Assembly: GCA_030704615.1 (NCBI GenBank)
Contig: CM060731.1
Span: forward strand, 6,324,001 to 6,388,000
Length of the DNA: 64,000 bases
From: Takakia lepidozioides
Taxonomy: Eukaryota; Plantae; Bryophyta
Direction of reading: 5' to 3'
Under the pieces are notes generated by a model. The model was not told where the DNA came from and made no database searches. It saw nothing but the letters and a program-made list of their open reading frames with translations. Position numbers and translations under genes: made by a program. Below, one piece after another: positions 4,501-64,000 of this stretch; position 1 is the stretch's first letter, and each line of letters begins with the position of its first letter.

Positions 4501-4859
4501 AAAAATGAAACGACCCCTGGATCTCGACCGTCTATTATTGACCATTAAAGACTTTATTTTCAAATCCAACCTTTTAAGTCTACCTTGGTCTATGTATTTA
4601 GTGAGGTAGTGTTGTTATTTCAAAGAATTCCATATGTAAAGGACTTTACGAAAATAGTTATTTTTAAGGCTCAAAATAGTTCATAAAGTTTACTTAAGAT
4701 TTTGGATGAATGTGTTTATTCTAAATTATTTATCCCTCAAAGCACATTTGGCCAAGTCCCTTTTTTTTTTGAAAAATTCCATAATTTCTAGCCATTGTGT
4801 TTTTGGTTATGATACTTGGAATATGGGAAATATATGTAGTTGAGTCTTCAAAGCTTGGT

Positions 4860-5075
4860 CCCTTTTTGCGGCGCCGGGGCGTCGCAAGAAAAAAATCCGT
4901 CGCAGCGAGGGCCCTCTTTCCCCCTTCATGCCACCTTGCGATGGCTGGGCGTCACAATGGTGTCGCAACGGGGGATTGCGACGTCGGGGCGTCGCAAAAA
5001 AGCGCCACGGGCTCGGCGTCGCAGGCTCAGCGCCGCGCGGGGCGTGGGGGCGTGGCTGGCGTCGCAAACCCCTCC
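4860..5075. repeat. GC-rich cluster of GCGTCGC/GCGACG motifs (CACTA-type subterminal repeats)
   Basis: Multiple cgtcgca/gcgacg copies occur in both orientations. The same motif is seen at 7950-8730. Confidence 0.5.
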
Positions 5076-36376: not shown

Positions 36377-37109
36377 CACTGGCCATCATCCTGGTCCAAG
36401 AATCGCCCATCAGTGGCACATTCTCCAAGATGTATGCTGGAGATACAGCTTGATGAAGCTGCAAGTGGCGCAAAACCCGCACCATCTCCCAAAACAGACC
36501 CGACCTCGAGTCTCGCAATCCATTGTCATGCCCGGCTGATGAATGCCCTTGGCAGGGCCAACCTGCCACTACCAGATCAATGGAGCCAACCCGGTCTAAA
36601 TCTTGTGCCCTCAGCAACGAGATGTCTGCTGGCAAGGCCTGCTGATATCCACGAACTCCAGCCACCGGCAACAACTCAGGGTACTGTTGCACCAACTGAG
36701 CAACATGGCGTAGGGAGACGCGTCGTGCAGTCTCATCCCTCTCCACATACAAGTAACGCCGTACTCGTACACCTGCCTGTAGAACAACAGCCAATCCGGT
36801 GCTGATCCCGCCAAACAAGTCCATAAGGCAAATGCCTTCATCCAGACACTGCCACACGATCAGTGTGGTGTCCAATGGTGACAACTGAGGTGGTCCTGGT
36901 GCAATCCCCGCACTGTCCTCCTCTCCTGACGGTACCAAAGCCTCTACCCAGGCTTGTTGCACCCGTCGATCAGCAACCCTCTGCAAATCCTTGCTCGTGC
37001 CCCACAATGGAGTCTGAGCAACCATGGCAGGCAACTTCGCCATATCATACATGTCATCCGTTTCTCCTGGAGGTATGTCATCCTCTGAATGAACATTTCC
37101 CTTAAGCAA
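36377..37109 (-). CDS. DNMT3-like C5 cytosine methyltransferase domain within a Gypsy polyprotein, 3'-truncated
   Basis: Motif I LMDLFGGISTG, motif II YLYVERD, motif III ADIS, motif IV IDLVVAGWPCQGHS, the GL.D.RSGLFWEMVRVL segment, and motif VI YILENVP. Motifs VIII-X are absent. Confidence 0.92.
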
Positions 37110-39777
37110 CTCTCCAGGCCAAAGTCACTGCAACTGTGAATGCTGCTAGTGTCGGCATCTTGCCCCGCTGGGCAACCGCAACTCCTCCTATAAACGTCAC
37201 AGGGAGCTGCACACGCCGGCCCTCCCCTGACTGCCATTCAGGCCTATAGGAAGCTGACTCCTCCCAAAAATCCAGGGTGAAGCCCATAGGGTACAACATT
37301 GCCCCACCAACCATGACATCGTACGAGACCGCGTCTGTCACAATGGCCTTGGCTCGCATCACTGAGCCATCTGTAGGGTGATCCGGCCATAGTCTGATAG
37401 CCAACTCACGCCGTGTCATGCCCCAAGCCTGCTCCGATCCTCCCAGAGACGTCTGTATCTGGAAAGGACAAGGCTCCATATCCGCCTCCGTGAGGCCCAA
37501 GCCTGCAATAGCAGCTCTGCCCATCATCAATGGCTGAGCTCCCGAGTCCAACAAGACCTGCAGTGGCCGGTACCTCTTGCCTGCCGGTCCACTCAAACAG
37601 AAAATGTCATCCTAGTTGTCTAACATGACAACTCCAAGTGTAACCATGGCGCGCTCAATGGCTGGCCTAGCTGGCAGCTCTATCAACCTAGCAGCTGCAA
37701 CTTGCCATGGCGCCGTTGTGGCAGTCTTGACCCTCAAATCCGAGGATCCCTCGGGCACTACACCTCCCACTATCTCCGCAAAAGATGAAGTAACCTCCCC
37801 ACTCTCACAGAGTGTAGCTGCCAGCCTGAACACCTCAGCTGGTCTTACCCTCGACGTCGCAATCATGGCAGCCAAGAACAATGGAGCCTGGCACACCGAT
37901 GTGGTCGCTCCTAGCAGCACACTAGCTGTCGTAGCTCTGGCAACACTAGGTAGTGGTGCTACCCGTGTAACTCTCCCCAATGGCATAGTAACCTCCGCCT
38001 CGGTAACAGTCGGGCGAGAACTAGGTGCCATGGATGGCGTCGACATTGTCTCCGCCAATGTGAATGACTGAGGAAGCCTAGCCTGACGGCTTGCCTCCCC
38101 ACGCTGTGGATCCAACTCTACCTCTGCACCTTGTGGCTCAGGAACTCGTGCTGCTCCTCGAGTCACGGCTGCAGTAGACTCCACCTGCACTAGTGGTAGT
38201 GCTGCTCCGCACATGAATCCCATGCCTCCCATATCTCATCCCTCAGGAGCAGGAGGTGGACCATCCGGCCTTGGAGCCGGTACCACCTGAGCTGTAGCCA
38301 TGGCAGCGAGCCTCTGCTTTAGATGCTGAAGCCGGTTGGCCATGCCTTGGTCAACACCCTGACCTCCGCGTCCTTGGCCATGTTGAGCTTGCCCTTGGCC
38401 TGCACCCCGTGCCTGGCCACCTCGTCCTTTTTGGGCTGCTCCCCCTCGCCCCCAGCCACCATTGTTCCCTTGGAACTGGCCTGGGCGCAACTCGGGATAC
38501 AAACCATAACACTGGGCCTCTCCATGTCCGTGCTTGCCACAATGCCCACACTGTGCAGGCTGTGCATGCCGGCCCTTTGCCTCCCTCTGGGCAATCCTTC
38601 TTGACATGGGGTCCTCCACATGTCCAGCACACCACATCCGCCCGTTGTTGGCTAGCAAATGAAGAGAGAGACCCCTGCATCTGAGGTCCTCTCTGCCCTT
38701 CCCTGAGCTTCACTTGAGCCCCCTTGTTGCCTTGAGCACATTGAGGTAGCCACTACCCCGTGGTGTCTCCTTAGCAAATCCCACCATGACCACTGGTTCC
38801 TCCTCCATGTTGAGCTCTATCCGCTCTGCCAGCAAAAACACATTTGCTAAGGTGGGTTGGGCCGCTTGTAAGAGAGTTGCATCCCGCACCCTTCTCCTCA
38901 GCTCCTTGTCCAATATCCCATACCAGAATTGGACTGCCTGAGCTTCCGTAACCCTTTGGGTTATATTTATCAAGCGCCTCACGTGAGTGAAAGCCTCCCT
39001 CAAGCTCTCGGTCGGCTTCCATTGGAACTCTTGCAAGCTCCGCAACTTCTCTGTCCTCACCCCTTGGTAGTTCCCTCTCAACTCTTCGAAGAACTCCACA
39101 ACATGATTGAAGGTAGGCACGGGTACTGGTGCTGGTGCGGTAGTGGCTTGGGTGGACGTCATAGCTACGTTACCACCAGTCCTACTAGTCCCACTGCTGC
39201 TTGCTGAAGCTGCAGGTGCAGCGGCAGGTGTAGCCACTGCCCTCGTGACTCTAGTGCCCCTAGTGATGGAGACATAGTCGGGTGACCAGTACATCCTCCA
39301 CTCCTCGATCTCAACCTCATGCCCCCACCTGAACTCATGGTAATCATCCATAGGCGGCCCCTCAAGGTGCTGAAACAGCCCCTTCCATGCCATGAAAGGC
39401 GTAAATAGTTGTGGATTGCGCATTTGCTGCAAATCACACCAACTATCAAACTCTTGGATAAAATTATCAAACTCTTAGATAAAATCATCCAACTCGATGG
39501 TGCCCACCGCCCCAGAGTACCTTCGTGGCCCCTTGGTAGCTCCATACATCTCCTCTATTGTGTCCCACAACAATGGCAAGGAAACAACTTGCACCGCCGG
39601 TATGAGTCCTCCTGATTCACAATCCGAATCAGAACCTTCCGTAGAAGACACAGGAGCTGAAGGTGGCCTAAATTGCACACCTCGTCTCGTGTACCCACTA
39701 GTATCGCTAGTGCTCGAACCGACACTGTCCCCAGCAACTAGTGGCACCTCCGTGTTCATACTCAACCGGTCATGAAC
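37102..39777 (-). mobile_element. Ty3/Gypsy gag, zinc knuckles and aspartic protease of the methyltransferase-bearing element (decayed)
   Basis: gag (ELDDFIQEFDSWCD, LFQHLEG, LQEFQWKPTESLRE, FWYGILDKELR); knuckles CWTCGGPHVKKDC and CGHCGKHGHGEAQC; protease VLLDSGAQP...YDVMVGG. There is a 21-bp duplication with a stop at about 39475 and several frameshifts. Confidence 0.88.
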
Positions 39778-39820: not shown

Positions 39821-41106
39821 TGTTGCGGCTTATGGTTTGGAATACTAAGTTCCTAACATAGCCTACACCTGTACCTGCATCCACCGCAAACACAGGAGAA
39901 ACAATGATGGTCTGGTTGGTCATCACCCCAGCCTCACCATCGACAGCATGCTCTAGGACTGGCCGGTGATCAAATCCGGACCAATCACCTATAAAAACAA
40001 GCGCCCACACAAAACTAGCATGGCGTACAGTCAAACATGCAGATATGGAGGGGATCCAAACACAAGAAATCAGAACGACAACTCCCCCACACCAATAACA
40101 ACTCCACGGTGTTGCTCCTGCAAGGACACCCCAGCCCAAACCCGGACTGACTCTTGCCTCCACCTACGGAAAGGTCTTGGCCTAATGAGAGGGTGGAAAC
40201 TACGAGGAAGAGAAGCTAAAGCAATGCCTAACCCCAGCATGCCCTCATCCCAACACTCTTCCTCTCCTCTCTTCCCTCACTTGCATGACCATGGGAATAT
40301 CATGAAGATACTCCTCAAACCGCCCTCCACGAGCTTCAAAATTTGGCCTTCAAGACCACATGCCAGTCCTTAAGTAGTCCACCAGTGCCTCCACGAGTCA
40401 GCAGAGGCCATCCACAGGTCAACACGGGCCACCACAGACCAGCACAGGCCCACACAGCTCACTGGTCACAGCCGTCACAGCCCCACACAGGCCACAGGGC
40501 ATAGCCCACCACAGCCTGTCACAGGCCATCACAGCCCCACAGGCCACAGGGCACAGCCCGCCACAGCCCATCACAGCCCATCACAACACGTCACAGCCCC
40601 ACAGGCCACAGGGCACAGCCTGTCACATCCCGTCACATCCCCTCATAGCCCGTCACAGCCCCACAGGCCACAGGGCATAGCCTGTCACAGCCCGCCACAG
40701 CCCATCACAGCTCGCCACAGCCTGTCACAGCCCCACAGGCCACAGGGCATAGCCTGTCACAGCTCGTCACAGCCCCATAGGCCATTGGGCACATCCTGTC
40801 ACAGCCCCTCACAGCCCCACAGGCCACATGGCACAGCCTGTCACAGCCCTACACAGGTCACAGGGGTCACAGCCCCAAAGGCCACAGCCCCTCATAGGCC
40901 ACATGGCACAGCTTGTCACAGCCCGCCACAGCCTGTCACAACCCCTCATAGCCCGTCACAGCCCCACAGGCCATAGGGCACAGCCCCTCACAGCCCCTCA
41001 CAGCCCCACAGGCCATTGGGCACAGCCTGTCACAGCCCGTTACAGCTCGCCACAACCTGTCACAGCCCCTCATAGCCCGTCACAGCCCCACAGGCCACTC
41101 ATGACA
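39821..41106 (-). mobile_element. Putative 5' LTR of the methyltransferase-bearing Gypsy element
   Basis: The minus strand starts TGTCAT at 41106, exactly at the array edge. A possible end ...GCAACA at 39821 lies just upstream of gag. There is no second LTR copy to confirm. Confidence 0.45.
40420..41100 (+). repeat. CACAGCC-based tandem array (gtcacagccccacaggccacagggcacagcc units)
   Basis: About 680 bp of 8-11 bp subunits in a variable higher-order repeat, with CG>TG/CA variants among units. Confidence 0.95.
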
Positions 41107-46405: not shown

Positions 46406-49400
46406 ATGGGGAACAAGAAGAACAAGTATAGGGTAAATGGAGAGGTAAGACCAGGCCCTCAAAAAAGGGCAAAACTGGCTTTGTTGGCTGCAGCCAGGCC
46501 CACCGAGGATACACGCAAACAAACCCACGCTGACCAGAAAAGAATGTATAGGGAGAGACTTCAAGCCCAAAAAGAGGCAGAGATTAATGCGGCTACTACA
46601 ACGTCTGGGCAAGGTTCTGTGGAAGATGCCAGGGTGGGGTTTGGAGAACGAGACAAGAGGAGAATAGCTTTGAAAATGGCCGACTTCTGTTACAAGCAAT
46701 TGAGGGAATGCCCAACACTTCATTCACAAACAGAGGTAATGGAGTTATTTTTGGGTCACCATCTCATTAAACTCAGCTTACCTGCCTATTACTTGCCGCC
46801 TAAGGAGGCCAAGGCGCATGCAGATTTGTTGAAGAACCAGCAGAGCTCCATGCAACTTGTTAAGGGTGTGCAGTCTTTAGATAAGCTTGCGAGTAAACGC
46901 TCATTCTTAACAGCGTCTGTTAGTGGAACCCAGACCACTGCTGTGAGGGCAACGGCACGTATTCTTAATATTCATCATAGCAATATTAGTCGTGCAATTG
47001 TACGACGAAGAGTCATTGATTCAGAAGGTGAGGGTTTGTGGGCTTTGGGTGGGAGAAAGAAAAGGTCTGATCATGTACCAGATGCGACCCGAGCAATCGT
47101 TTTGGCTTGGTGGGTAAATGAGACACGAGTGTCACCCAACAAGAAAGATGTCGTGAGCAGCGCGTATCGAGGAAAGTCTATGATACACAACCTGCTCACT
47201 ATCTTCTTGAGACTCAGGTAAGCGAACCCTCTCTTTACAGTGTTTGTGTGGGCTCTCAGTACTTTACAATCCTTCTACACTTACTACTGTACATAACTGT
47301 ATTGGACTATGTTGGAGTTTGTCAACTGCCATTGTGTTGTTTGGGTTGCCTCGTACATTTTCCCTAGACAAGGTACATCGTCACCTGTAAACCTACCAGT
47401 GGACTGAGATTACTGTACTCAATTGTGGACACTATGTCCAGCTCATGTCCTGAATTGGAGTGTCTTGAAGATGTCCCTCTTGTTCATGGACTGGTACTCA
47501 TTGTAAACAGGCCTGGGATGGACTAGAAGTACGACTCACTAGCATGCACTCCTTATATTATGACTAGATAGGACAAAATAGCATGCACTCCATGTAATTT
47601 GATTTGGAGGGACTAGAAGTCGATGTACATGTACTCCATTAGTACATGCACTCCTTGAAATGTGACTAGAAAAGGACAATGACTAGGACTAGGACCGATT
47701 TGGACATGCATTCCTTGATATGTGACTAGAAAGAAGTAGGACTAGGACTGATTAGGACATGCATTCATTGGTATGTGACTATGCATTCATTGGTATGTGA
47801 CTAGGACTAGGACTAGGACTGGTTAGTACATGCATTCCTTAATATGTGACTAGAAAGGACTCACACTCGGACTGATTAGTACATGTACTACTTCATATGT
47901 GACTAGGAAGGACTAGGTCTAGGACTACTAGGACTGATTAGTACTTGTACAATTTGACATGTGATGAGAAATGACTATGACTAAGACTAGGTCTAGGACT
48001 GGTCTAGGTCTAGTAGTAGGTATTCTTAGTGCACTAAATGGGATTCTCTTTGTGCATGTTGTGGTGGCAATGCAGACTGCTTTCTTTCTTCGCTTCAAAT
48101 CAGCCCATCCCAATGTCAAAGTGGGTCAACGATTGTTTGAGTTGTTGAGGCCATTCTTTGTCAAACGCCTGAAGGATCGTAATGTTTGTTGCTGCAAATA
48201 TCATGTGGAGATGGCGGAGTTGAAGGATGGGTTCAACAACATGCGGACTGCCGAGAGGGGTGTCCACTCTCCATCATCATGTACTTGTGACTGTAATATT
48301 TGTCGACGTGGACCAGTATTAGATGGTGAAGCTGGTTGTCAAGCGAACAAGCACCCCTACAATAGAGTGACTTGGCTTTGGCAAGAAATTGTTTGTCCCA
48401 AAGGGGAATTGGATGAATGGCATCGGCGAGACTGTCTCATGGGAGAGTGCTTGAGGTGTGGCTCAAGTAAGTTATCTATTTGTCCCGTGGAGGCAAATGG
48501 TTGTGATTTGACAGTGCAGTGGAGATGCTATGCAAAAGAGAATGTTGGGGAGAAAGATGGAGCCCCTAGAATGAGACTGAAACTCCAATACCAAACGACT
48601 TCCTCTGTTGAATTCTTGTCGTACTTCAAACCCAAGCTACAGGCTTTTGTTCGTCATAACTTTGTAGCCCGATGGCAAGATGCTCAGTTTAAAGCCAGTT
48701 TGAAATCTTTGCCAGAGAATACAATATTGTCTGTTGTTGACTTTGCTGAAAACTACACTTTTACAGTTCAGAATGAAGTGCAAGAGATGCACTGGCACAG
48801 TTTCCAGATCACTATATTGGTGCACATTACCTACCGGTGGAATCCACACCCTGATGTGAATGATCCCGATTCCAAGGTTTTGAAAGAAATGCACTTTTAC
48901 ATTTCTGATGACAACAAGCATGACACGCTGTTCGTACAACATTGCTTTCGGTTTCATTGGAATTACCTTGCTGAAGCAGGGTTCAGACCTGAATCGCATT
49001 GGGTATGGAGTGACGGTTGTGCTGCTCAGTTTAAAGGTGCTCGTCCTTGGTATTTTGTTAGTAGGTACCCCCACATCACAGGGGGTTGCACAATGTGGTG
49101 GAACTTTTTTGGATCAGGGCACGGGAAAGGTGAGCACGATGGGGCTGGTGCTGTGATCAAGAGGGCTTTACGAGCAGAGCAGTTAAACTCAAATGGGCAA
49201 AATGCTGCTGAGGCAGTAGTTTTTTGGCGCAAGAACCTGTCCACCCGACCTCCTTCTTCGTACTCTAAGATTAGAACAGCAGTGAAAAGACATTTTTGGC
49301 TTGTTCGTACAGAAGATGTTGACCGTACACAAGAGTGGGATTGCAAGACCGTACCTGGAACTCGGTCTTTACATTCCATTCTTGGGAGGAACAAGTCAGA

Positions 49401-49985
49401 CCCAACCAAACTTATGGTTCGAGACTTAGCATGTTTTTGTCCGCATTGTTTGGATCTTGATTGGGACAACTGCATCAGTATTGCTCATGCACAAAAATGG
49501 AAGTTGCAAACCCTGCAACCTACAAATACAACTGCTGTCCGGAGGCAGATTGAAGAAGAAGGGGATGAAGAACAAGAGTTTGGGGGAGATGGGGAGGACT
49601 TGGCCTCCTGCTTGGATGCAGGGGACAATTTTGCCTGCAATGCTGAAGCTGGAAACTCAGAAGGGGTGGACTTCTACTTGCTCTGTTGTGAAAGGCCGGT
49701 TCACGTTGTTATGGAGACATTCACAGATGGGTGGGGAAGTACTTTTGACCCTGGCGAGCATGTGGTTGCAGGGAGATATTACCAGTTGTGTGGAAGAAGA
49801 GATAAGGCTTACAAGTTCCTATCTGACCAGCCTTTGGCATTTCTGTATTCGCATTTGGTAGGGCTATCAAATTTGCTATGCCTCCAGCGACATATCGAGT
49901 CAAAGGCAAGGATGCAGTCTTCACCTTGTCTGCGGATGCATTGGAAGGCATCAATGAAGCTCTGGCAGCAATGGAAGATCGCTAA
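46406..49985 (+). mobile_element. Two-exon DDE-type DNA transposase gene (DFAENY / SDGCAAQFK / HGKGEHDG family; superfamily uncertain, possibly Sola-related), two frameshifts
   Basis: Exon 1 46406-47217 (HTH-like VRATARILNIHHSNISR; 1-nt shift at about 47156). Intron 47218-48075 (gtaagc...tgcag). Exon 2 has Cys clusters (CCCKYH, CLMGECLRCG, CFCPHC) and the catalytic motifs. A shift at about 49860 restores RAIKFAMPP...EDR*. Confidence 0.8.
47400..48015 (+). repeat. GGACT(AG) motif array with a ~55-65 bp higher-order unit in the transposase intron
   Basis: Recurrent catgcattcctt..atatgtgactagaaaggactaggactaggactgattag units. Confidence 0.9.
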
Positions 49986-51606
49986 GATGGCATGTTGCAG
50001 GCCAATCCATGGTTGACGGGCAACTTCCCTTATCGGGATGGGGTCCAATTCTCCCTTGGGTTATGTAACTCAAATATGTAGCAATGTGAATTACAAGTTG
50101 CTTGTGAGCTGAGAGATTGTTTTCGGAATTTGTATGTATGTAGCTTTGTTATTTGGCCGCAGATTATAATTCATAATCTATAATCTATCTTGCAAGCTAT
50201 GGCTGAAGAGGCTGTGGCTGTGGCCAAATTTGTTACTGTTCAATTGAATGTGCCTGGTGACTAGAATTCCCGCACTAGTGCTGTGGTGTATCACTTCACA
50301 AGGCGGGGAATTTCAATTTAATGTGTCTGGTTTTCTTTCTGTGATTGGTTTCTTGTTATTTGGAGTGTGTCTGCCTTCCTCTCTGATCACACAATCTGTT
50401 GTCCTCCCCCTTCTCATACCAACTGGTTGGCAAAGGTGCCTGGCTACGAAGATATGGCAAAACCTTATCATAAACCCTACAACTTGTCATACTTCCTGGT
50501 CCTTTCAAAGTTCCACACCCTCGTTTTGGATAAGAAAGTGGAGAAGATCATAGCTGTAAAAATAAGGCACATGATCCTCAACACGCTGAAGCCGGGCGCC
50601 ATTCTAGTCTGAGTTGCTAACAGCCTTCCAAACACAGTGGGACAATCAAGTGGAACAGCAGCAGACCTGCTATCATACTGTCTTGATTCCCTCTTCAAAG
50701 TTAAGCCATCCTTGCATATTGAACTGCATGCATTAAATCATACACACAAGTAATTTTTGGGCTTGGATGAAGTTGAGAGATACTATCAAACTCTCTGAAG
50801 AATTAGGCAGGCAGCACTACAAATCACATTTATGTGCTCAATTGAGCGAAGGTAGATTGCTTAGAGCTGCCATTACTGAGGTATATTCTGTTTAGTGAGT
50901 TGATTAGTGTCCTGACTTGGGGTACAGAACCAGCTTGTCTCCTGTAGAGAGGGGAATGATGGGAATGTTGTCTGTTGGCCTGGCTTCGGTCCGCCATACC
51001 AGGGATCTTCACCAAGGAGCTAGACTAATTACCATTGAGAGATGGAGACTTGTATTGTTGGTGTTCGATTGCAGTTTTGTAAATGAACTATTAGAGTCAA
51101 GCAAAGGAGGATAGAGGTACGCAACCGGATGTAGCCATACCATCCACCAGTTAGTCAAATTTCAGGCGCAGACTCTGTTAAAGCCACGCATGTTGGAGAA
51201 TTGTAGCACAAGCAGGAAAATCAATGGGCCTTTCAAAGCCATCTTTCTCACATAGAATGAATAACAGTAGACTGCCTGCACGAAGGTATTCTAGCAATTC
51301 CTATCAGAAACAGATAGCAAAATAGAGTGCATTGTTTTCAAAAACCACTGTCATGATATTGCTGCCTTACTCACAAGTTTAACAGCATACCTATCAGCAG
51401 AAAATGAACAAAGAACAGTAATGTGCATGCCCTCAATCCATGTCATGTGTCCATTGTGAGCTACTCGAGAAACCACAAGGGCAAATCCACATCACATGAC
51501 TTGGCTGGGCTAAATGAACAAGTACTGATGAAGAGACGAGACCTGTCCCCACAATGACAGCAACGAGTGGTAAAGTCCTCATAAGTGTACAGTATTCAGC
51601 TTGTAC

Positions 51607-54600
51607 CTAGTTGATATGTTTTCTTTTCTTCTTCTTAGGGCCTGCACCAGAAGAATCTGCATCCATCTTCAAGTTAGGTGGGGTCTTGACAGTATTAAGG
51701 GACTTGACAACAGGCCCCCGAGTGGTCAAGTTTGGAGGAGTCTTCACGGTGTTCAGTGACTTCACAACAGGGCCCCGAGCGGCCTTCACAACACCATCCC
51801 GTGGGATTGAGTTACTCTTATCATGGTGGCTCAGATCGTTGTCTTCATTCGTATCCAAGGGCTTGTGCACGACAACTCTCTTTGATGAGGGGGTACTTTC
51901 ACCTGGGCACTTGTCCATATCCTTGTCAATTGATACCTTAGAATCCGCCCTAGTGGTGGGCTTCTTTGCATACTCTGCACTCAATGCCTTGCGAGATCTC
52001 TTTCGTTCTCGTTTACGCTTCCCTGTTGCTTGAACATGTGGACTGACAAGGGCTACAGCTGGGGGGTTCAACACTGCTCCAAGAACAGGAGGGGTTGTTG
52101 CTAAGGCATGAGGTACATATACTACCATAGGTAATGGAGAACCACCATCCAATTGAGCTGGAATTGCGGGAATGGATATTGGCGGAGCAACAAGGGAGGT
52201 AGCAACTGGTGGAGTGACATGAAATATAGGATCTGAAACTTGTGAGGGGCCTCCACCTATGGTACTGTGCAACACAACTGTATCAGAATCAGACTGGGAG
52301 TCGGCCCCAGCATCAGTTTCAAATCCATGTGACCCCATTCTGAGTCTGATGAGAGGGTTGCCACATGTCCAGTATTTTGGGCACCATCTCTTTCAACCTT
52401 CACATCCACATAAGGAGGAACAACAGTGGATGGGATTGTCAAGTCCACAACATCTTCATGTGTACTTTGTAGCGTATGTGTCGTGACAATCTCTGGAACA
52501 AATGCAGCCTGCAGTGGAGATCCAGGAATCTTTTTTGGTGGAGAACCAGGAATGAGGAACTTCTTGACATAACCCTTTCCTGAAGCTGAAACCTCTTGCA
52601 TGATGGTATCAGGTGTGACATCAACCTCAGGGTTCAACGGATCACCAACAATTGGTGCAACGATCCCCGGCCGCGACAGCCCCAAAGGTGACATTTGAAG
52701 AGTTGACGAGCTTGGAGTTCGAGGGAAGTTTTGGTTCACAGCACTACCACCATGTCCACTTTGGCCTCCACTGTAGTTGGTGGTGAATGCGCTATAGTTG
52801 GTGGTGGCCTGAGATGGAGGTCCTGGTCTTCGTTTGTTGGCATCAATGAAGCCATCATCTGCTATCACACCTACACCATTACAACTGGTTTGAGAAGGCT
52901 GAATTATCACTTGGTGCCTACTGTCTACCAATACAACATTAACTGTAATTTGAGTCCAGACAAGTCATTGTAGTCCTTACCATTGGCCGAAGTCCCAACA
53001 GTTGGACTACAATAATTATGTGGGGAGTGCACAGTCCATCATAATGGACTTTTTGTCCCCCATATTAGACTTCCAAGTTCTATGCAGCTGATGGTGGGAC
53101 TACAAGCAAGATTCACACTCCCTAATTAGGACTCACACTCCATCTGGTCCATAACTCAGATTCCAAGTTGAGAAGCAAGCTCCTCAGTAAGGACTCGCAT
53201 TCCACATCCATTATTTTGCAGTTGGACTCACACTCCACATGATTAAGCACATGGACTGACCCTCCACAGGACTCTGATTCCAAACTGGAAATCAGTGGAA
53301 ATCATTAAGGACTCATACTCCCAATAATTAGTCAGCAAGTGGACTCACACTCCCCATGACTAAACACATCGACTCATACTCCACATGAGTCAGCACTTGG
53401 ACTCACACTCCACATGACTGAAGACTCAGAATTCCAGTTAAGAATGACACTCCTCAATAAGGACTCCCCAGTAAGGATTCACTCCACTAAAAGGACAAAT
53501 AATAACATTTGCAGTCCCACATTTAGACTCATAGTCAGTTGAAGGGGTTGAAGGTCCAATCTTGGGACTACAGTCCTGAGGATTGGACATGAAGAGGTAC
53601 AGCCTTGGACCACACAAGTTTTCTGAAGAAGAAAACATGGAAATGTTGCAATCAATCTTACCTGGAACTTGGGTGTTTCTAACCCTGGCTTCGTGAAGTT
53701 GCTTTGACATCCACCTTTGGCGCAGCTCAACCACTCTCAGCTTTTCCGCAAGTGCCTGCACCTCTGGGTCAAGAATCCTAAGCCCAAAACTAGAACACCA
53801 ATCAGGATGCATGATCTCTAAACAGCTGAAGTCCCTACACCTGTTTGACGTCTTCATATGGGATGCCATACAAGCAGGATGGTAAGTGTGCTTACAAGAT
53901 GCCACCACCATGTCCCAACAGTGGAAACCTTTGTGGCAAACAGGGCAAGGAGAGACCTTCAGGAAATCCTTGATGGACGTACTATCTTTGATCACTTGAG
54001 GATGACATATAGGCATAGGATAGATGACGAGTCCTTTGTCCCCATTTGTCAAGGCCTCAATCTGAGCTTGGATAAGACTCCTCTCTGTGTCAGCAACATC
54101 GACCACATTCTCTGCCACTCTAATGTCCCTGTCTTCCTGGTCCCCTGCATCACACAAAGCATTGAACTCTTTTTCGGTCTTATCAGCATTGAGCCAAAAT
54201 TCTGCTTCAATTGATTTCTTCTGGTCAAGTTCCCTTTGCATCTCAGACTGTCTTCCCTTTCCACAATTCAGTAACCCAACACTCTCTTCCCCTTTTTGCA
54301 TTAAGGTCTCTTCCCGGCTCGGATTGTGGCACCCTCGTGGGTGAGTTTGGCCTCTAGGTCTGCAATCTTGTTCCGACACTCTGCAAGACACCATTGTCTG
54401 TCTTCCATTTGCACCCGAACAGTCCGCGTCTTCTCCATCAAGTCCAACTTCCCTTTCTTTAACCTCTCCAACTCTTCCTTCCCCCCACACATCTCCTCAT
54501 ACTTCAAATCATGTAGTTCCTGAAGACTCGCTAGAGCAGTTGCCACATACTCTTGCTCATGTTTTTTCCTTTCCATCTCTGCAATCACTTGCTCAGGCAT

Positions 54601-55200
54601 TTGTTTCAGTCCTTCTTTGCCTCTACCTGGGGTTTTGCGTAGCCTGTCTTTCAATTCACAAACTCCTAGCTTTGGCTTACTGTCTGTGCTGCCAGGGTCA
54701 TTTGCTTCTCGATGCTCCTTCATTCTTTCTTGTTGCTTAGCTGTCCATGCCGCATATGCTGCCCAATTGAGTTTTTGTCCAGTCCTTTTTTCATAGACAA
54801 TGCCCCTTGCCATCAAGTTTGCAATGATACCACCGGTTGGCTTACAATCATACCCATGAACCTTACTCCATAGGTCCTCGATTTTGGGAATCATACTCTT
54901 GTCAGTACAACCCATGTAAAAGTAGCCATTCTTGTTTGCAGGTTGTCCAAACAACTTTGCACATTGTTCTTTGGTGATGTCTTTGTCTAAGAGAAGTTGT
55001 TTGGGATTCTTGCCTGTCGCATTCAGCTTGAGGACATCCCTGAAGTAATCTGCTGATTTGTGCCCCCCTCTTTCGCCCATAGTATCTTCAGATGCTGCAT
55101 TGGAACTCTTCCCATTCGTAGGTGAATTCTGTAACTTACTCCCCAACTGCACCATTGTTTTGAACCACTTCTTGAGTGCCCTACATACTCCCAGCCCCAC
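51607..55200 (-). CDS. Transposon accessory gene (frameshifted): PMD-like domain, coiled coil, RING-H2-like finger, disordered tail with NLS
   Basis: 54301-55200: LFG...KNGY.Y..C......IEDLW..VH...MARGIV.E..GQKLNWAAYA plus heptads. After a frameshift near 54330: CPVC-x13-CKHTYHPAC-x10-C-x4-C. Donor CCAG|gtaag at 53662/53661. Pro/Ser-rich ORFs 52257-52931 and 51607-52338 end in PKKKKRKH. The gene is convergent with the transposase. Confidence 0.65.
53000..53600 (+). repeat. GGACTCA(c/t)ACTCC motif array (~30-bp spacing) in the accessory-gene intron
   Basis: More than a dozen ggact(c/a) cores, e.g. ggactcacactccacatga, recur between about 53005 and 53480. Confidence 0.88.
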
Positions 55201-55986
55201 ATTCCCATTAAACTAGTTTTTTACAACTCCAGGTTGGTTATGTACGGAGACAGCAACATGAGGGGGCAAGGATGGAGCTACAAACCAACACCCTACCGAC
55301 ATTTCCAGCTTCATGAGAACCAACAACCAACAAAACAACAAACCAACAAACCTAAACCCTACTGACATTTCCAGCTTCATGACAACCATACTACCTAATT
55401 CTGACATGAAATTACCTTTTCAATCAGAGGCCAAGTCTGGATCGTCTATGGTTAACGCAAGTTACCCCTTCAAGAAGTGCAAGTGATCCACATAGATGAC
55501 AAACCTGCTTTCCACACACGTTTTCAAATTCTATATTCCCCCACATGGTGAAGTTTCAGAGAATCAACATTCACATATTGATGATATGCATTGCCATATT
55601 CCTCTTCGATCCCAACGAATGATTGACAGAAGGGACAAGTTCCTTCAATCTAGCGTCATGGTTCAGTTTAGGTAATTAGGTACGCAAGGATGAGCTGGGT
55701 TGTCACGTGCTACAACAACAAGAGACTACTCTACCCCTCTACCCCACATAGGCTATGAGGTACGCAATAAAAGTGAAAATATGAGTAGGGAACACCAGAT
55801 TGCACAAAAGCTAAGGGGGTGCCACACCTGTAATGCTTTTGCAAGATGTGGTGGGAGGTAGCGTGAGGGAGAGCCGCAGGCCACCTGCCATCCCGCAAAT
55901 CAGCTGCACAAACAGCTGAAACTTGTTGAATAGTAGCCCCACAAATGTGACAACATATGCAGGCAAGCAGATGGAATCAGAGGATA

Positions 55987-58900
55987 GTGAGCACCTTCTT
56001 GACGTTGAGAGTTTCGTGGCGGACTGTGTGTACGAGCCCGAGGTCTGTCTCTGGTTGACGGAGATGGTTGATCACTACCTGGATAAGTGAGGCCCTCTGG
56101 AGGCTGATATGGAGGTAACCTTTCCGGCATAGGAGACCCCCTTCGCTTCTTCTCTGCCATCTGAACTGCATAGTCTTCTCCCATGTCAAAAGAATTCGGT
56201 GAAGAAACAGTTGTATCAGAATCCTCATCGCCTCTCAGGTGTTTTAATTTTCGAACTTTTTGTGGAATCATCTGGGGCATACAATGCTGTCCTACCATGT
56301 CTGGAAGTTTGTATTTTACAACTTGGTGTAACCGCTGAACAGCAAAATTGGTGTAGACATTGAGCTCCTTGTCTGTCCAGGTGAGTGGGGTACCAATTAC
56401 TGGTGCAGCGTGCAAGTACTTCCATGCCACATGTCCCTTATAGAAAATGTCATCAATGCCGAATTTGTGTGTTGACAAATGGTTCCAGGCCGCTTGAAAC
56501 ATGAACGAATTTGAGAATCCTTTTGCATCATAACTTTTGGGTCATATAGGTACATATGAGGTGGTACCGAAGGTATACCCCATGACCTCCACTGGAATAA
56601 CTCAGAAAGCGTGTTTGCATCTTTTGTTGCTCAATGTGGTAACGTACCAGAAAACAAGCAGCGTAGTATAACCCGCACCCCATGACAATACTTGCTATCT
56701 CCTTGGTCTTGGTATAAATGAGTCCATGTACAACCTGGAAAGCAATCAATTCCCTCAACATGGTACCTGCCTCGTGCCAGTATTGTGCAAAGTGATGATC
56801 TTCAATATGTCGATTGTTCGGAAGAACTTTAGTCCTAGTTGCCACTGGCAGCCATATACGCATGATTTGGTAGTAATGTGCGAATGACTGCGGAGGACTA
56901 AATTCTTTCCAAGCCAAATCCAACATGATGGGAATTTGGTTGAAGGGCATAATCATAGCCCTACTGTACTCCCTGGCAGCTGGAGTTTTAGGTGGGTTAA
57001 AAGCGGCATTGCCCCATACCTCCGGCTGTGGTGGTTGTGGTGTGGTTGTAGTAACCACAGGTTTAGCTATTGGTACAGTGACTTGTTGTGGTGGTGGTGG
57101 TACTGGCTCCTGTATCATTGGCATCTCCTGCACCTCCTGTGAAGATTGAAAAGCCAAAGTTCTGGCTTGTAAATAAGAAGCCATTAGCTGTTCCTGAGGG
57201 ATATAGACTCTTTGGTCGATGTTTGAAGTGAGGTCTTCTATTTGAGTCTGGAGTCCATCTACATCCTCTTGTAACTCTGCTATCCTACTATAGACATTGT
57301 CTATAGTAGTTGTGGCAATGTTCTGCACCTGCAGCCTGAGCTCATTCATCTCGCTTTTCCGTGGTGTTTTGCCCTCTACTGGCCCTTGTGCTAACCAGAC
57401 CTGCATAAGGCTGTTATCCACCAAGTTGCTTGTGGTTCCCCTGAGAGTTTGCTCCTCTCTTAGCTTGTACAATTCCAACTGCTGTTGTAAAGCCTCCATG
57501 CGCTTCGCCTGAGGTTCAACCAATTGCGCATAAGCAGCAAGTAGATTATTGGCTTCCTTCCAAGCCTTGTTATTGACCGCGATTTCATTTCTATTGGCCA
57601 TGATGGTTTGTTGCAACTCCACGATGTGCTTCTCTTGATCAGCTTCAATCTGCCTGTATTGCTTGAAAGTATCTTCATTGCGACAGATTGTATTCTTCAT
57701 ATCGACAATGAGCTTCATTTGCTCAACATTCTCTTCTTCTGCCTTCGTACATTTTTCCGCTTGACTGTTTATTTCTTTTGTAGATTGGTCAAGCATAGTT
57801 GTAAATGTAGCACATTGTATTGTCATCCTGTTATGCACTGTCTGCAACTCCGTATGTAGTGCATTCAGTTCTTGCAACTTGCTTTCATGCTGCACCTGCA
57901 TTTGGTATAGCTGTTGCTTATGTGCTTCGTGCAACTGGTCTTGCGCGAGGCCTGCCTCAATCAATTGTTCCTTGGCCAATTTCAAAGCCATTTCTGTATT
58001 TCCCAAGTCCTGCTTCAACTTGAGAGTGACCTCTTCATCGACCTTGTTTGCACACTCAGTGGCTAGTCGAGCCTCAAACTCCTTCCTGAGTTCCTCTCTC
58101 AAGGCTGTCAATTGGGTAATTGGAACATGGGATTTGACATAAGTCCCCAACAAATTAAGTGTCCTGCCTATGGAACTCATCAGCATTGCCTGTTGAGGGT
58201 CATCATGGTGAGGTTGCTGTTCTTCCTCCTGATCTTCAACAGTGTGATGTCTCACGAACCATTCAGGCCATTGTCCCACCGGATTTTTCTTCCTGAACTA
58301 CTTCATCTATCACCGGTGCTACAGTGTCATGACCTTCCGCCTGTGGTACCTCCGACACAGGTGCGTGTATTATTTGCACCTCAGGATTTCCCTTGGGCAA
58401 CTATTGCACCTCTGGGATCTCTGTTTCCTTGACCAGACCAGAATATTCATAGAGAAGGTCCCCCTTCTCCATTTCTGCCACTATCTGTTCTGTAGTTGGA
58501 ATATCTAACCATTCTTTTTCCAAATCAATTATTTCTGGTTGAGCTGCATGGATAACTCGTGACCTTGTGACAAGTCGATCAGCTGGCTGTGGTGGTTGTG
58601 ATACAGAAGTAACTTCCTCCTCCCTCTCTGAAGGTCCTGCTTCCAGTAATAGCATTTCTCTGTGCTGTTGTGCCCCTTCCTGACCATGAGCTTGGGAAAC
58701 ATTATCATGCGGAGTCCGTGAAGCCAGTGGATCCGCCACTACAGTCTTTCCCCGTCTCTGCCTCTTAGTCTCGGGTTGCCCTGCTAGTCCACCCTCACTG
58801 TGTGAAGAGCCTTGCTCTTCCATTGCAGTTGTTTCTGGCTCAAACACTCCCATTTCCTTCCTTTCTTGTGCATCAAGTATGCCAGAATCAAGGATTATTT

Positions 58901-59495
58901 GAGCAATGATTGGGCCAGACACTATGATAGGAGACTTTGCGGTAGTACCTTGTAATCTTTTCATCTCCTCTACCAGCGCGTTGTACATTATGTCCGCCCA
59001 TTGTACCTCTTGTCCCTTCAGGCCTTTAAGTATTTCCTCCGTGAAGGATCTGCTCAAATACTGTTGGTTCTGTTTCATGGCAATCAGAACGTTCAATACC
59101 TGGCCTACCTCTTTTAACCCTGGGTACACAGCCTTGGTACAAGCATAACCCTGAGTTTTAAAGAAACTCCCTTCTTGGAATAAGTCCCCTATTTGCAGTC
59201 TTGCCCTGTTTTCTCCACATGCACCTGACCTGCTGGCAATCGAAACAATTGCTGGAGGTATAGGGAGTAATCATTAATTCTACTCCCTTCACCGTTGTTG
59301 TTCCTGTCCTTGGCTCAAAGTTCTGCAAAATTGTAACATGTACTGTCTATGGTGTAGTGTCCAATCTAGGCTTTGCAATCCTTGCAATCTCAGCTCCTCC
59401 AGTATCTGTATCGCCTGTGGGGTAGCAATTGTTTGTTTCTGCAGAATCATGGTGCTCTTCACCCTGATTTCCTCCATGCCTCTCACTCTCTTCAT
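55987..59495 (-). pseudogene. Copy A of a long single ORF (PMD/Transposase_32-like N-domain, acidic linker with NLS, coiled coil, Pro-rich linker, helical C-domain) of a gag/pol-less LTR element
   Basis: Joining frames gives MKRVRG..LEELRLQGL..LDW....YMLQF.QNFEPRTGTTTVKGVELMITP..LQQLFRLP...FKTQGY...KGQEVQWADIMYNAL...GPIIAQI, continuing through ORFs 58401-59129, 56528-58279 and 55900-56502. Confidence 0.75.
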
Positions 59496-60080
59496 TTAGA
59501 CTCACCGAACTGTTTTGGCTGTAACAACTGTAGGAATGCCTGTAGTGCACAAAGCATAAACGTATGGTTGCCGCAGAAAGCTATGGGTAATTTCTTGTAA
59601 GCCTGCGGGGCTTACAAGCATCGCTCAAGAGAAAAGCTCCGCTCTGTCTTTTCGTGTCTATGCCACTGCGTAAGTAATATTGCGAGCGTACAGTCTGTTA
59701 GTTCCTCCATAGTTTCCAAGGTATAGCATTGATGGTCTGTCCTGTCGAGACGCCCGTTACTCAGAACGACGCCGCCTCTTGCGCTCAATTTCCCTCCATT
59801 TTCTTGTTCCTTTCTCTGGTTTTCTATTGGCTGTATCCGCTGTGACTGGATTTTAGATTTTATCTTCTTTAGTGGACTTTCCCTGTTGGATAGTCCACTA
59901 GGATCACACATGTGACAAGAATTCCGCTTTTCTGTACTTGCCGTCTGTTCCGTTTCCCTTTTTCCGTACTCATTAATGGGCCCGCCTTTCATCCCTTTTG
60001 ACGGCCGTTCTTGTCCTCTTTCTTTTTGACACCTGTTCTTGCACTTCCTTCTTGGCTGTGTGTCGCGCCCTGACCTCCAC

Positions 60081-61019
60081 TGTCGCGCGGCTTTTACTCA
60101 CCCATCCCTTCGCTATACGAGGCGGAAACTCCAAGATAGAAGAGTTGGAAATCTCTAAGTACTCAGCCCGCGCAGAACAATCAGTCATGACCTACAGCTA
60201 GTGTATCATGGGGGTGTTTCCTATTTGTTTCCTTTTCCGCATTCATCTTAGCTACCTTACCATTGATAATTAAGTATCAGTTTGCTTCATCAATTTATCG
60301 GTTTCCTTAACTCCTCCATTCAATCCACAGCTTCACTCAGATCTCTCTACACAGTGTGATTGTATCGTATAAGTATCAGATTATGATTTATCAGGTATCA
60401 GGCCGAAGCCATTATGTCTCTATTCTTCTTTCCTATATCACTATAGCTTTGCATATAACAAGCATCTACTAATCCTCTTTTCTCCTTCATCGTGCTCTCC
60501 GATCTCCGCTCCCGCCTGACTCCGAAGTCCTCCCCGAATAATGATCCCCCTCTCCATTCCCCGTTTTCCCTTTTTCCTCCTCCTATCCGCGGTTCTAACC
60601 GTTTCCCTCTCTAACCGTCGTATGTGAACTAACATGTTCCCTTCACAGGTGTTGTTCCCCACAGTCGTTCCCTGTCCTACTCTTCGTTCCCTATTATCGT
60701 GACAGCTGTGTCAAGCGGTGACTGGCTGTGTTTGGCTGTGTCGGGCTGTGACTGGCTGTGTGGCTGTGCCGGGCTGTGACTGGCTGTGTGGGCTGTGTGG
60801 GCTGTGACGACTGTGACGGGCTGTGTGGGCTGTGACGACTGTGACGGCTGTGTTGGCTGTGTGGGCTGTGACTGCTGTGTCGGCTGTGTGGGCTATGTAA
60901 CCCCCCTCTACAGTGCGCTGCTGTCACCCCTAAGGTTCCTGTTTGTCTCAGTCTGTGCAAAATTAAGGGTACCCTACAGATCCCGTATAAGTGTCTAAGT
61001 CCCCTACAGTCCTCTAACA
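60081..61019 (-). mobile_element. LTR (~939 bp, TGT...ACA) shared between two tandem units
   Basis: On - the PPT GAGGGAGGAAGGGG-taaa (61037-61020) directly precedes TGTTAG. The end ...GCGCGACA is defined by the 30459-31509 copy and is followed by gTGGAGGTCAGG (PBS position; tRNA unidentified). It contains an ACAGCC array at about 60700-60900. Confidence 0.85.
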
Positions 61020-61058
61020 TTTACCCCTTCCTCCCTCAAAAAGCCGTGTCCTCACGGT

Positions 61059-64000
61059 TTACTGTTTCTGAGTAGCAACCCTTTGTGAGTGAGCACCTTG
61101 TTGACGTTGAGAGTTTCGTGGCGGGCTGTGTGTACGAGCCCGAGGTCTGTCTCTGGTTGACGGAGATGGTTGATCATTACCTGGATAAGTGAGGCCTTCT
61201 GGAGGCTGATATCGAGGTAATCTTTCCGGCATAGGAGATCCCCTTTGTTTCTTCTCTTCCATCTGAATTGCATAGTCTTCTCCCATGTCAAAAGAATTCT
61301 GTGAAGAAACAGTTGTATCAGAATCCTCATCGCCTCTCAGGTGTTTTAATTTTCGAACTTTTTGTGGAATCATCTGGGGCATACAATGCTGTCCTACCAT
61401 GTCTGGAAGTTTGCATTTTACAACTTGGTGTAACCGTTGAACAGCAAAATTGGTGTAGACACTGAGCTCCTTGTCTGTCCAATGAGTGGGGTACCAATTA
61501 CTGGTGCAGCGTGCAAGTATTTCCATGCGATATGTCCCTTATAGAAAATGTCATCAAGTCCGAATTTCTGTGTTGACAAATTGTTGCAGGCTGCTTGAAA
61601 CCATGAACGAATTTGAGAATCCTTCTGTATCATAACTTTTGGGTCATATAGGTACATATGAGGTGGCACCGAAGGTAATACCCAATGATCTCCACTGGAG
61701 TAACTTTGAAAGCGTGCTTGCATCTTTTGTTGCTCAATGTGGTAACGTATCAGAAAACAAGCAGCGTAGTATAGCCCGCACCCCATGACAATACTTGCTA
61801 TTTCCTTGGTCTTGGTATAAATGAGTCCATGTACAACCTGGAAAGCAACCAATTCCCTCAACATGGTACCTGCCTCGTGCCAGTATTGTGCAAAGTGATG
61901 ATCTTCAATATGTCGATTGTTTGGAAGAACTTTAGTCCTGGTTGCCACTGGCAGCCAAATACGCATGATTTGGTAGTAATGTGCGAATGACTGCGGAGGA
62001 CTAAATTCTTTCCAAGCCAAATCCAACATGATGGGAATTTGGTTGAAGGGCATAATCATAGCCCTACTGTACTCCCTGGCAGCTGGAGTTTTAGGTGGGT
62101 TAAAAGCTGCATTGCCCCATACCTCCGGCTGTGGTGGCTGTGGTGTGGTTGTAGTAACCACAGGTTCAGCTACTGGTACACTGACCTGTTGTGGTGGTGG
62201 TGGTACTGGTTCCTGTACCATTGGCATCTCCTGCACCTCCTGTGAAGACTGAAAAGCCAGAGTTCTGGCTTGCAAATAAGAAGCCATTAGCTGTTCCTGA
62301 GGGATATAGACTCTTTGGTCGATGTTTGAAGTGAGGTCTTCCACTTGAGTCTGGAGTCCGTCTACATCCTCTTGTAACTCTGCTATCCTACTATAGACAT
62401 TGTCTATAGTAGTTGTGGCAATGTTCTGCACCTGCAGTCTAAGCTCATTCATCTCGCTTTGGGTGAGCTTCCGTGGGGCTTTGCCTTCTACTGGCCCTTG
62501 TGCTAACCAGACCTGCATAAGGCTGTTATCCACCAAGCTGCTTGTGGTTCCCCTGAGAGTTTGCTCCTCTCTTAGCTTATACAATTCCAACTGCTGTTGT
62601 AAAGCCTTCATGCGCTTCGCCTGTGGCTCAACCAATTGCGCATAGGCAGCAAGTAGATTATTGGCTTCTTTCGAAGCCTTGTTACTGACCGCGATTTCAT
62701 TTCTATTGGCCACGATGGTTTGTTGCAACTCCACGATGTATTTCTCTTGCTCAGCTTCCATCTGCCTGTATTGCTTGAAAGTATCTTCATTGCGACAGAT
62801 TGTATTCTTCATATCGACAATGAGCTTCATGTGCTCCACATTCTCTTCTTCTGCCTTCGTACATTTTTCCGCTTGACTGTTTATTTCTTTTGTTGATTGG
62901 TCAAGCATAGTTGTAAATGTAGCACATTGTATCGCCATCCTGTTATGCACTGTCTGCAACTCCGTATGTAGTGCATTCAGTTCTTGCAACTTGCTTTCAT
63001 GCTGCACCTGCATTTGGTATAGCTGTTGCTTATGTGCTTCGTGCAACTGGTCTTGCGCGAGGCCTGCCTCAATCAATTGTTGCTTGGCCAATTGCAAAGC
63101 CATTTCTGTATTGGCCAAGTCCTGCTTCATCTTGAGAGTGACCTCTTCATCGACCTTGTTTGCACACTCAGTGGCAAGTCGAGCCTCAAACTCCTTCCTG
63201 AGTTCTTCTTTCAAGGCTGTCAATTGGGTAATTGGAACATGGGTTTTGACATAAGTCCCCAACAAATTAAGTGTCCTGCCTATGGAACTCATCAGCATTG
63301 TCTGTTGAGGGTCATCATGGTGAGGTTGCTGCTGTTCCTCCTGATCTTCAACAGTATGATGTCTCACTAACCATTCAGACCATTGTCCCACCGGATTTTC
63401 TTCCTGAACTACTTCATTTATGACCGGTGCTACAGTGTCATGGCCTTCCGCCTGTGGTACCTCCGACACAGGTGTGTGCATTATATGTACCTCAGGATTT
63501 CTCTTGGGCAACTGTTGCACCTCTGGGATTTCTGTCTGCTTGACCAGACCAGAATATTCATAGAGAGGTCCCTTTCTCTATTTCTGCCACTATCTGTTCT
63601 GTAGTTGGAATATCTATCCCTTCACTTTCCAAATCAATTATTTCGGGTTGAGCTGCATGGATAACTTGTGACCTTGTGACAAGTCGTTCAAGTGGCTGTG
63701 TTTGTTGTGATGCAGAAGTAACTTCTTCCTCCCTCTCTGAAGGTCCTGCTTCCAGTAATAACATTCTTTTGTGCTGCTGTGCCCCTTCCTGGTCATGAGC
63801 TTGGGAAACATTATCATGCGGAATCCGTGAAGCCAGTGGATCTGCCACTACAGTCTTTCCCCTTCTCTGCCTCTTAGTCTCGGGTTGTGCTGCTAGTCCA
63901 CCCTCACTGTGTGAAGAGCCTTGGTCTTCCATTGCAGTTGTTTCTGGCTCAAACACTCCCATTTCCTTCCTTTCTTGTGCATTAAGTATGCCAGAATCAA
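61059..64000 (-). pseudogene. Copy B of the same long ORF (5' part beyond the window)
   Basis: ORFs 63558-63962, 61418-63520 and 61059-61526 are colinear with copy A at an offset of about 5.1 kb. Frameshifts fall at different positions from those in copy A. Confidence 0.8.

Follow-up and report, generated by a model that had tools for sequence, protein, structure and literature searches.

The window analyzed here is a stretch of 64,000 nucleotides of the Takakia lepidozioides genome (GCA_030704615.1, contig CM060731.1, positions 6,324,001 to 6,388,000), and all coordinates refer to positions within it. Reading along the minus strand at its right end, we find ORF B with its stop codon, 21 nt, a polypurine tract (PPT), a 939-bp LTR, one G, a PBS-like site that is initiated by TGG, a 585-nt leader, an ATG and ORF A. 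This confirms the order given in the original prediction, ORF(B)-PPT-LTR-TGG-leader-ORF(A), with the leader now measured at 585 nt. The two ORF copies belong to a direct repeat, in which copy A (55986-58891) and copy B (61088-64000) share 94.9% identity over 2917 columns with a period of 5102-5112 nt. They are oriented head-to-tail with one LTR between them, which is the only LTR of the pair within the window. The description of this locus as a tandem LTR element holds for the direct repeat and its ~5.1-kb period, but the LTR part of the description depends on a single visible LTR. The homology between the copies ends at 55986 in A, which corresponds to 61088 in B, 29 nt short of the native stop of ORF B, and this breakpoint of copy A was placed at 55985-55986. 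Past 55986, 3' of ORF A, neither a PPT nor an LTR is present, and a search at this left breakpoint for terminal inverted repeats of a DNA-transposon end found none. At the other side, the window end (64000) is the point that matches 58891 in copy A and the 5' end of ORF B lies beyond it. A permuted-LTR reading of the locus was rejected, because the LTR is followed by a full internal region and not by a partial repeat.

The identification of the block at 60081-61019 (minus strand) as a true LTR is supported, and it is bordered by a PPT on one side and by a PBS-like site on the other. Read from 61019 to 60081 it has the TG...CA ends of a terminal repeat, in the form of TGT...ACA termini, with TGTTAG at the start and GCGACA at the end. 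The PPT, GAGGGAGGAAGGGG (61024-61037, minus strand), lies 21 nt past the ORF B stop, and the four nucleotides TAAA separate it from the TG of the LTR; the junction string is unique in the window, with 0 occurrences expected by chance. At the other edge, one G past the LTR end, the PBS-like site TGGAGGTCAGGGCG (60066-60079, minus strand) begins with the TGG that had been predicted for the PBS position. This PBS remains putative; no tRNA gene with which it could be compared was found in the window, and the other near-matches of the 14-mer all lie outside an LTR context. The untranslated leader, which links the PBS-like site to the ATG of ORF A (59496-60065, minus strand), contains an open frame of 161 codons, in which a Pfam search found no domain. 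Inside the LTR there is a microsatellite array of CACAGCC type with 9-, 18- and 28-nt periods (60705-60898).

Another copy of the LTR was found in inverted orientation at 30459-31509 (plus strand), with 85-89% identity. Its 3' end is identical (..GCGCGACA), so that the LTR 3' terminus recurs exactly in an independent copy ending at 31509, and the length of the CACAGCC-type array differs between the two LTR copies. This copy is a truncated solo LTR: it lacks the first ~25 nt at its 5' end, and its flanks are unrelated and contain no PBS, TSD or adjoining pol domain. It was previously taken as a sign of a mobile family. A copy at a second locus does exist, yet it is evidence for the spread of the LTR family only, and not of the ORF-only form.

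ORF A extends over ~1,190 codons (55903-59495, minus strand), with its ATG at 59495 immediately behind a stop and after the leader, and it is intronless over 3.6 kb. It contains two in-frame stops (59273-59271 and 58403-58401), the latter private to copy A where copy B has Gln, and two 1-nt deletions near 56576 and 56501, and its last 28 codons run into unrelated DNA. Of ORF B, the 3' ~980 codons are visible (61059-64000, minus strand), in the form of a piece at 63962-63558, an intact 700-codon piece at 63520-61418 and, after a 1-nt deletion near 61483, a piece at 61526-61059. Its C-terminal end is short, polar and native-looking, as is the stop TAA at 61061-61059. The disabling changes, namely the frameshifts and one nonsense codon, are not common to A and B but private to the copy in which they occur. 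Broken frames were treated piece by piece, without a consensus or a mended ORF.

The sequence of the ORF points to purifying selection in the past. Comparison of A and B over 855 codons results in a dN/dS of 0.33 (p 2.4e-8), whilst the wrong-frame controls on the same blocks give 1.15 and 1.27, and the changes at codon positions 1, 2 and 3 number 31, 25 and 56, an excess at the third position. These counts, together with the private indels, bear out the divergence by third-position changes and non-shared frameshifts on which the original prediction had based a selected ancestral ORF, and the dN/dS that it proposed as a check is clearly not about 1. A neutral tandem duplication in place is ruled out by this value. 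Since a neutral in-place duplicate is expected to have a dN/dS near 1, the A and B units most likely go back to separate source copies, two in number.

Pfam searches of the ORF pieces of the 5.1-kb unit visible between 55.9 and 64 kb found no domain of gag or of pol (PR, RT, RNase H and INT), the set that characterizes an autonomous Ty3/Gypsy or Ty1/Copia element. The claim that there is no room for gag and pol holds for copy A, as an LTR-leader-ORF unit. By contrast, neither the proposed PMD-like/Transposase_32 identity of the protein nor its proposed function as a chromatin protein found support. In the search for the former, hmmscan of the N-terminal pieces gave no match to PMD (PF10536), Transposase_32 (PF20167) or ATHILA ORF-1 (PF03078) even at E<=10, and the Pfam scan of all ORF pieces gave chance coiled-coil matches only. 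The sole hint in this direction is a weak embedding neighbourhood, in which the N-terminal 169 amino acids have feature neighbours in the ESM atlas at 0.88-0.89 (145-146 shared features), a level below that usual for same-family pairs, from clusters with ATHILA ORF-1 or Transposase_32. The ORF shows neither a Retrotrans_gag match nor a CCHC knuckle, and hhalign against the two gag ORFs in the window gave a probability of <1%. Comparison of its N-terminus with the adjoining ORF at 54301-55200 gave just two short collinear matches (E 0.1).

Analysis of the protein sequence indicates an N-terminal domain of ~170 amino acids, followed by a linker that is acidic and bears a KRQRRGK patch. Next come a helical rod of ~320 amino acids that is free of proline and glycine, a linker rich in proline and a C-terminal domain of ~250 amino acids, which is also helical, and the protein ends in a basic tail that is proline-rich and contains an LPPY motif. 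The conserved C-terminal domain includes one hydrophobic 19-mer, which is borderline (KD 1.72). AlphaFold2 models were poor, with a pLDDT of 48 for the C-terminal and 43 for the N-terminal domain, and none of the searches with these models (Foldseek on the PDB, atlas shape and VIA-wide) found anything above background; a PDB sequence search was also null.

An exhaustive phmmer search of 1.84 billion cluster representatives revealed one real relative, P0001 (E 4.6e-9), which matches in the C-terminal domain, and two further matches that are repetitive and false. Word-indexed searches with the 700- and 289-amino acid ORF pieces gave no match, and P0001 as a query found itself only. On its contig, L001, this relative has no gag, pol or LTR context; it carries an in-frame stop and may be interrupted by introns. 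Further copies were sought by a metagenome protein scan, an LTR pattern scan and exact-product look-ups, and none was found.

Our preferred reading, to which we give a probability of about 0.45, is that the locus consists of two decayed, recombinant LTR units in head-to-tail order, which are non-autonomous, carry an accessory ORF only and have one LTR in common, and which may form the edge of a longer array; this tentative figure applies jointly to the identity of the ORF as an orphan retroelement accessory protein. Each unit would consist of an LTR, a PBS, the 585-nt leader, one ORF of ~1,180-1,200 codons and a PPT, ~5.1 kb including one LTR. Since the unit has no gag or pol, copying would be possible only in trans, with a related autonomous element providing both particle and enzymes. 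Selection kept the ORF intact in the lineages that led to both copies, as the dN/dS of 0.33 shows, and both died afterwards through private frameshifts and nonsense mutations. Units from different sources may have been joined, either by unequal recombination between LTRs or by template switching during reverse transcription, and the 3' end of copy A, including its PPT and LTR, would have been lost later, at 55986. Tandem copies that share an LTR are common among non-autonomous plant LTR elements (PMC13570524).

In a strong alternative, to which we give appreciable but minority weight, the ORF would belong to a large autonomous Gypsy family, as its normal accessory gene at the 3' end or as an extension of its polyprotein. 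Copy B would be the tail of such an element, with pol beyond the window, and copy A a one-off derivative without gag-pol, produced by an internal deletion or from a reverse-transcribed spliced subgenomic RNA (leader plus accessory ORF) and then placed beside B by LTR recombination between elements; a self-sustaining ORF-only family would not exist. The position of ORF B directly 5' of the PPT, which is the site of sense env-like ORFs in plant Gypsy elements (PMC7264820), fits this, as do the embedding neighbours of the N-terminal 169 amino acids, and autonomous sources for both copies would equally lead one to expect a dN/dS below 1. Yet the leader has a normal length and no pol remnant, and ORF A has its own ATG right behind a stop, an arrangement that a random deletion junction would rarely create. 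The selection signal would also be expected from a host gene, or a domesticated one, that had been duplicated in tandem with an old LTR as promoter region, if the duplicates had diverged in place under purifying selection at the level of the organism and later became pseudogenes. The possible introns of the distant relative would suit such a gene. This origin is nonetheless improbable, as the LTR edges coincide exactly with the PPT and the PBS-like site, the ORF runs for 3.6 kb without introns, both copies are dead and the relative itself has an in-frame stop; moreover, many annotated homologues would be expected for a conserved host gene, whereas the 1.84 billion cluster representatives gave one weak match. 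The tandem layout might also have arisen in the assembly, for example if two alleles or two dispersed copies had been stitched head to tail, and the repeat does extend to the window edge. However, the sequenced moss plant is haploid, the copies are 5% diverged with private indels, and the junctions along ORF-PPT-LTR-PBS-leader-ORF are clean and make biological sense, which makes an artefact very improbable.

The pair of accessory-ORF-only units raises the further question of whether such units sustain themselves as a family. One could propose a bryophyte LTR family without gag and pol that keeps just the ~1,190-amino acid orphan accessory protein (N-terminal domain, long helical rod, conserved helical C-terminal domain and LPPY or PPPY tail) and borrows gag and pol in trans. 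The protein would be held under purifying selection because it has to act on the RNA or the chromatin of the very element that encodes it, perhaps in the role of packaging adaptor or of anti-silencing factor. We consider this extension rather unlikely. If ORF-only units do propagate as a family, the sole function that an element cannot borrow may be that of an 'extra' retrotransposon gene; this would indicate a cis-acting role for poorly understood accessory proteins and would add a coding class between TR-GAG and LARD among the non-autonomous LTR elements. If the unit instead arose once and locally from a giant Gypsy element, the locus is an ordinary by-product of retroelement decay.

Elements of the LARD/Dasheng type are longer than 4 kb, have LTRs, a PBS and a PPT without gag or pol, rely on an autonomous partner and have a non-coding internal domain. 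The unit described here is similar in its length of more than 4 kb, in the presence of LTR, PBS and PPT and in the absence of gag and pol; unlike in a LARD, its internal region is not non-coding but almost wholly one constrained ORF with a dN/dS of 0.33. Terminal-repeat retrotransposons with a GAG domain (TR-GAG) have a single Gag ORF, with a capsid domain and usually a CCHC knuckle, and are smaller than 4 kb (PMC4350172). They share with our unit the non-autonomous LTR structure, exactly one ORF between leader and PPT and a presumed mobilization in trans (PMC4350172), but our ORF does not encode a Gag (Retrotrans_gag and CCHC are absent and the hhalign result was null) and has ~1,190 codons in a unit of 5.1 kb. 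Another comparison is with the sense additional ORFs (env-like, aORF-3S) of the Athila, Tat and Retand Gypsy elements, which follow pol (PMC7264820, PMC11963269). Like these, our ORF is large, in sense orientation, rich in helix or coiled coil, has one hydrophobic 19-mer and ends just before the PPT, as seen in ORF B, and its weak embedding neighbours carry ATHILA ORF-1 or Transposase_32. It differs in that the ORF of copy A stands directly behind the leader and not after pol, and in that no Pfam family is matched. Env-like aORFs have a signal peptide or membrane anchor, to which only the one borderline hydrophobic 19-mer might correspond here. Maize Bs1, as cited in PMC7264820, is likewise an LTR element that has no pol and codes for a non-retroviral protein in its internal region. 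According to the same description Bs1 carries transduced fragments of host genes, whilst the ORF here has no known host parent and one distant, broken relative. The arrangement of the pair itself, internal-LTR-internal with one LTR common to two units, is that of the TRIM/Cassandra-type arrays (PMC13570524). Those tandems mostly arise within one element (PMC13570524), whereas the dN/dS of 0.33 found here argues for two source copies or for selection in place.

The two copies of a direct repeat on the minus strand (copy A, 55986-58891; copy B, 61088-64000) are 94.9% identical over 2917 columns and are spaced 5102-5112 nt from start to start, with copy B reaching past the window end. Reading along this strand, the TAA stop codon of ORF B (61061..61059) is followed after 21 nt by a purine tract (PPT; GAGGGAGGAAGGGG, 61037..61024) and TAAA, and then by a 939-nt LTR (61019..60081) that starts with TGTTAG and ends with GCGACA, which gives it TGT/ACA inverted ends. 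One G after the LTR end there is a PBS-like site (TGGAGGTCAGGGCG, 60079..60066). The PPT-LTR and LTR-PBS junction strings each occur once in the window, where none is expected by chance; at a few other places the window has strings similar to the PBS, none of which adjoins an LTR end, and it contains no tRNA genes. The order of ORF, PPT, LTR, TGG, leader and ORF described in the original prediction is therefore seen, with a leader of 585 nt, although the start of ORF B lies outside the window.

The third, inverted LTR copy that had been reported is present at 30459-31509 with 85-89% identity to the block between copies A and B, and the CACAGCC-type microsatellite inside the LTR is of unequal length in the two. 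This copy ends on the same final base as the LTR (..GCGCGACA at 31509) with unrelated DNA beyond, lacks the first ~25 nt, and has neither a detectable target-site duplication around it nor a pol domain beside it; it is thus a truncated solo LTR. At 33998-34840 (+), 2.5 kb downstream of it, an isolated integrase C-terminal SH3 domain and a chromodomain form a chromovirus remnant, with no further pol domain in between. Other features of the window are a Gypsy fragment at 36165-37596 (-), in which a C-5 cytosine DNA methylase domain (PF00145, E 6e-13) comes after an aspartyl-protease piece, and an intact 681-aa ORF at 47971-50016 (+) without a Pfam match, which has transposase-like motifs (DFAENY, SDGCAAQFKG and HGKGEHDG) and is part of a neighbouring element. 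There are also two tandem arrays (28841-29783, units of ~290-304 nt; 40483-41046, 42/10-nt periodic, in a GC-rich (55%) stretch) and two host genes, an intronless PPR protein at 41-1540 (+), whose PPR motifs account for the 303-nt DNA repeats at 143-1264, and a multi-exon site-1 protease (MBTPS1-like) at 12492-19339 (-).

ORF A starts with an ATG at 59495, immediately after a stop codon and with the LTR 585 nt behind, and can be traced for ~1,190 codons to 55903. It carries in-frame stops at 59273..59271 and 58403..58401 and 1-nt deletions near 56576 and 56501. The damage in ORF B is different: 2 nt are missing near 63569 and 1 nt each near 63400 and 61483. In this copy 700 codons in a row (63520..61418) remain intact, and Gln stands at the position of the ORF A stop at 58401. 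As had been claimed for the frameshifts, every comparable disabling change is confined to one copy, and therefore the common ancestor of A and B had an intact ORF. Homology ends at 55986 (61088 in copy B), 29 nt short of the ORF B stop. Beyond this limit ORF B ends after nine further polar residues, whereas ORF A runs through 28 mostly hydrophobic codons within unrelated DNA; copy B thus carries the native 3' end, and copy A has lost its last codons, PPT and 3' LTR. No direct-orientation copy of this LTR was found elsewhere in the window, nor inverted repeats that would make the 55986 breakpoint a transposon end. Directly downstream of ORF A lie two overlapping minus-strand ORFs (53438-55200): one (54301-55200) has a coiled-coil tail and two short motifs that occur in the same order in the ORF A N-terminus (GxIIAxxxxxG and EQ(I/V)(V/I)AEME; E only 0.1), and the other (53438-54490) gives a weak RING-finger match (zf-RING_2) at E 0.002, which falls short of the Pfam cut-off.

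Over all four gap-free blocks in the true frame (855 codons), dN/dS between A and B is 0.33 (50.5 synonymous changes in 541 sites and 61.5 non-synonymous changes in 2012 sites; binomial p 2.4e-8), while the same blocks in the two wrong frames give 1.27 and 1.15. The ratio is 0.24 in the central rod and C-terminal domain, 0.62 in the acidic N-terminal linker and 0.42 in the C-terminal tail. Together with differences of 31/25/56 at codon positions 1/2/3, this bears out the proposed third-position excess and selected ORF. By a rough inference, some 0.076 of the divergence would have built up under constraint and some 0.023 neutrally; the neutral share is consistent with the observed damage of six indels that shift the frame and one or two nonsense changes. 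A tandem duplication within one element is rejected, since decay in place would bring the ratio near 1. The locus is dead; its structure and selection signal are real.

From its sequence, the encoded protein consists of an N-terminal region (~170 aa), an acidic linker that contains KRQRRGK, a Pro/Gly-free stretch of ~320 aa that is rich in E/K/Q/L and interpreted as a helical rod, a proline-rich linker, a C-terminal domain (~250 aa) and a basic, proline-rich tail with LPPY in A and LPRY in B. It has no CCHC knuckle. Pfam searches of the ORF pieces gave no relevant family even at E<=10, and a word-indexed search of 5.8 billion clusters gave no matches. Metagenome scans and look-ups of the exact product likewise yielded no further copy of the ORF. 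An exhaustive phmmer search of 1.84 billion representatives found one true relative, P0001, which matches the C-terminal domain (E 4.6e-9, 23% identical) and is located at 3666-4931 (+) of a 5-kb Logan contig (L001, run SRR327455). An in-frame stop interrupts it at 4557-4559, and PPPY occurs in the tail near its end; no gag or pol was found near it on the contig, and short ORFs upstream of it may be exons. In the ESM-atlas feature search the C-terminal domain had no usable match; the nearest clusters to the N-terminal 169 aa are unnamed streptophyte proteins (0.90-0.92), followed by clusters with Transposase_32 (0.89) or ATHILA ORF-1 (0.88) in a minority of their members, a neighbourhood that by the atlas's own statistics amounts to no more than a lead. 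AlphaFold2 produced poor models (pLDDT 48 and 43), which suggest helices but yield no fold, and structure searches with them stayed at background level. These results thus do not support the earlier description as PMD-like or as a chromatin protein; the product is an orphan protein.

The facts fit an LTR-retroelement origin of the pair, because a dispersed TG..CA-ended repeat has the PPT and the PBS-like site right at its two edges and the intronless ORF runs in the same direction as the LTR. The suggestion that there is no room for gag or pol holds for copy A, where LTR, PBS-like site, leader and ORF follow one another and which was therefore non-autonomous; the 5' side of copy B lies past the window end. 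Our preferred reading, at a probability of roughly 0.45, is that both copies are ORF-only units: two source copies would have given rise to A and B, and LTR-LTR recombination or template switching would have put them together. LTR-sharing tandems are common among non-autonomous plant elements (PMC13570524). That the unit forms a propagating family is less likely than not.

The main alternative, possible but less favoured, assigns ORF B to a large autonomous Gypsy element with pol beyond 64000, as its usual 3' accessory gene, and takes copy A for a single derivative. A spliced subgenomic RNA with leader and ORF joined could have been reverse-transcribed into such a derivative; env-like ORFs are expressed via RNA of this kind (PMC7264820). 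Yet ORF A has its own ATG, which directly follows a stop and is preceded by an ordinary-length leader, and a random deletion junction would rarely yield such a start. Both readings rank above a host gene pair under selection in place, which is improbable, and an assembly artefact, which is very improbable.

With one ORF and its presumed mobilisation in trans, the unit resembles TR-GAGs, but its ORF encodes no Gag and it exceeds 4 kb, which places it outside this group. It is of LARD size, whereas its interior is coding. The ORF occupies the same position as env-like aORFs; in copy A, however, it comes directly after the leader.
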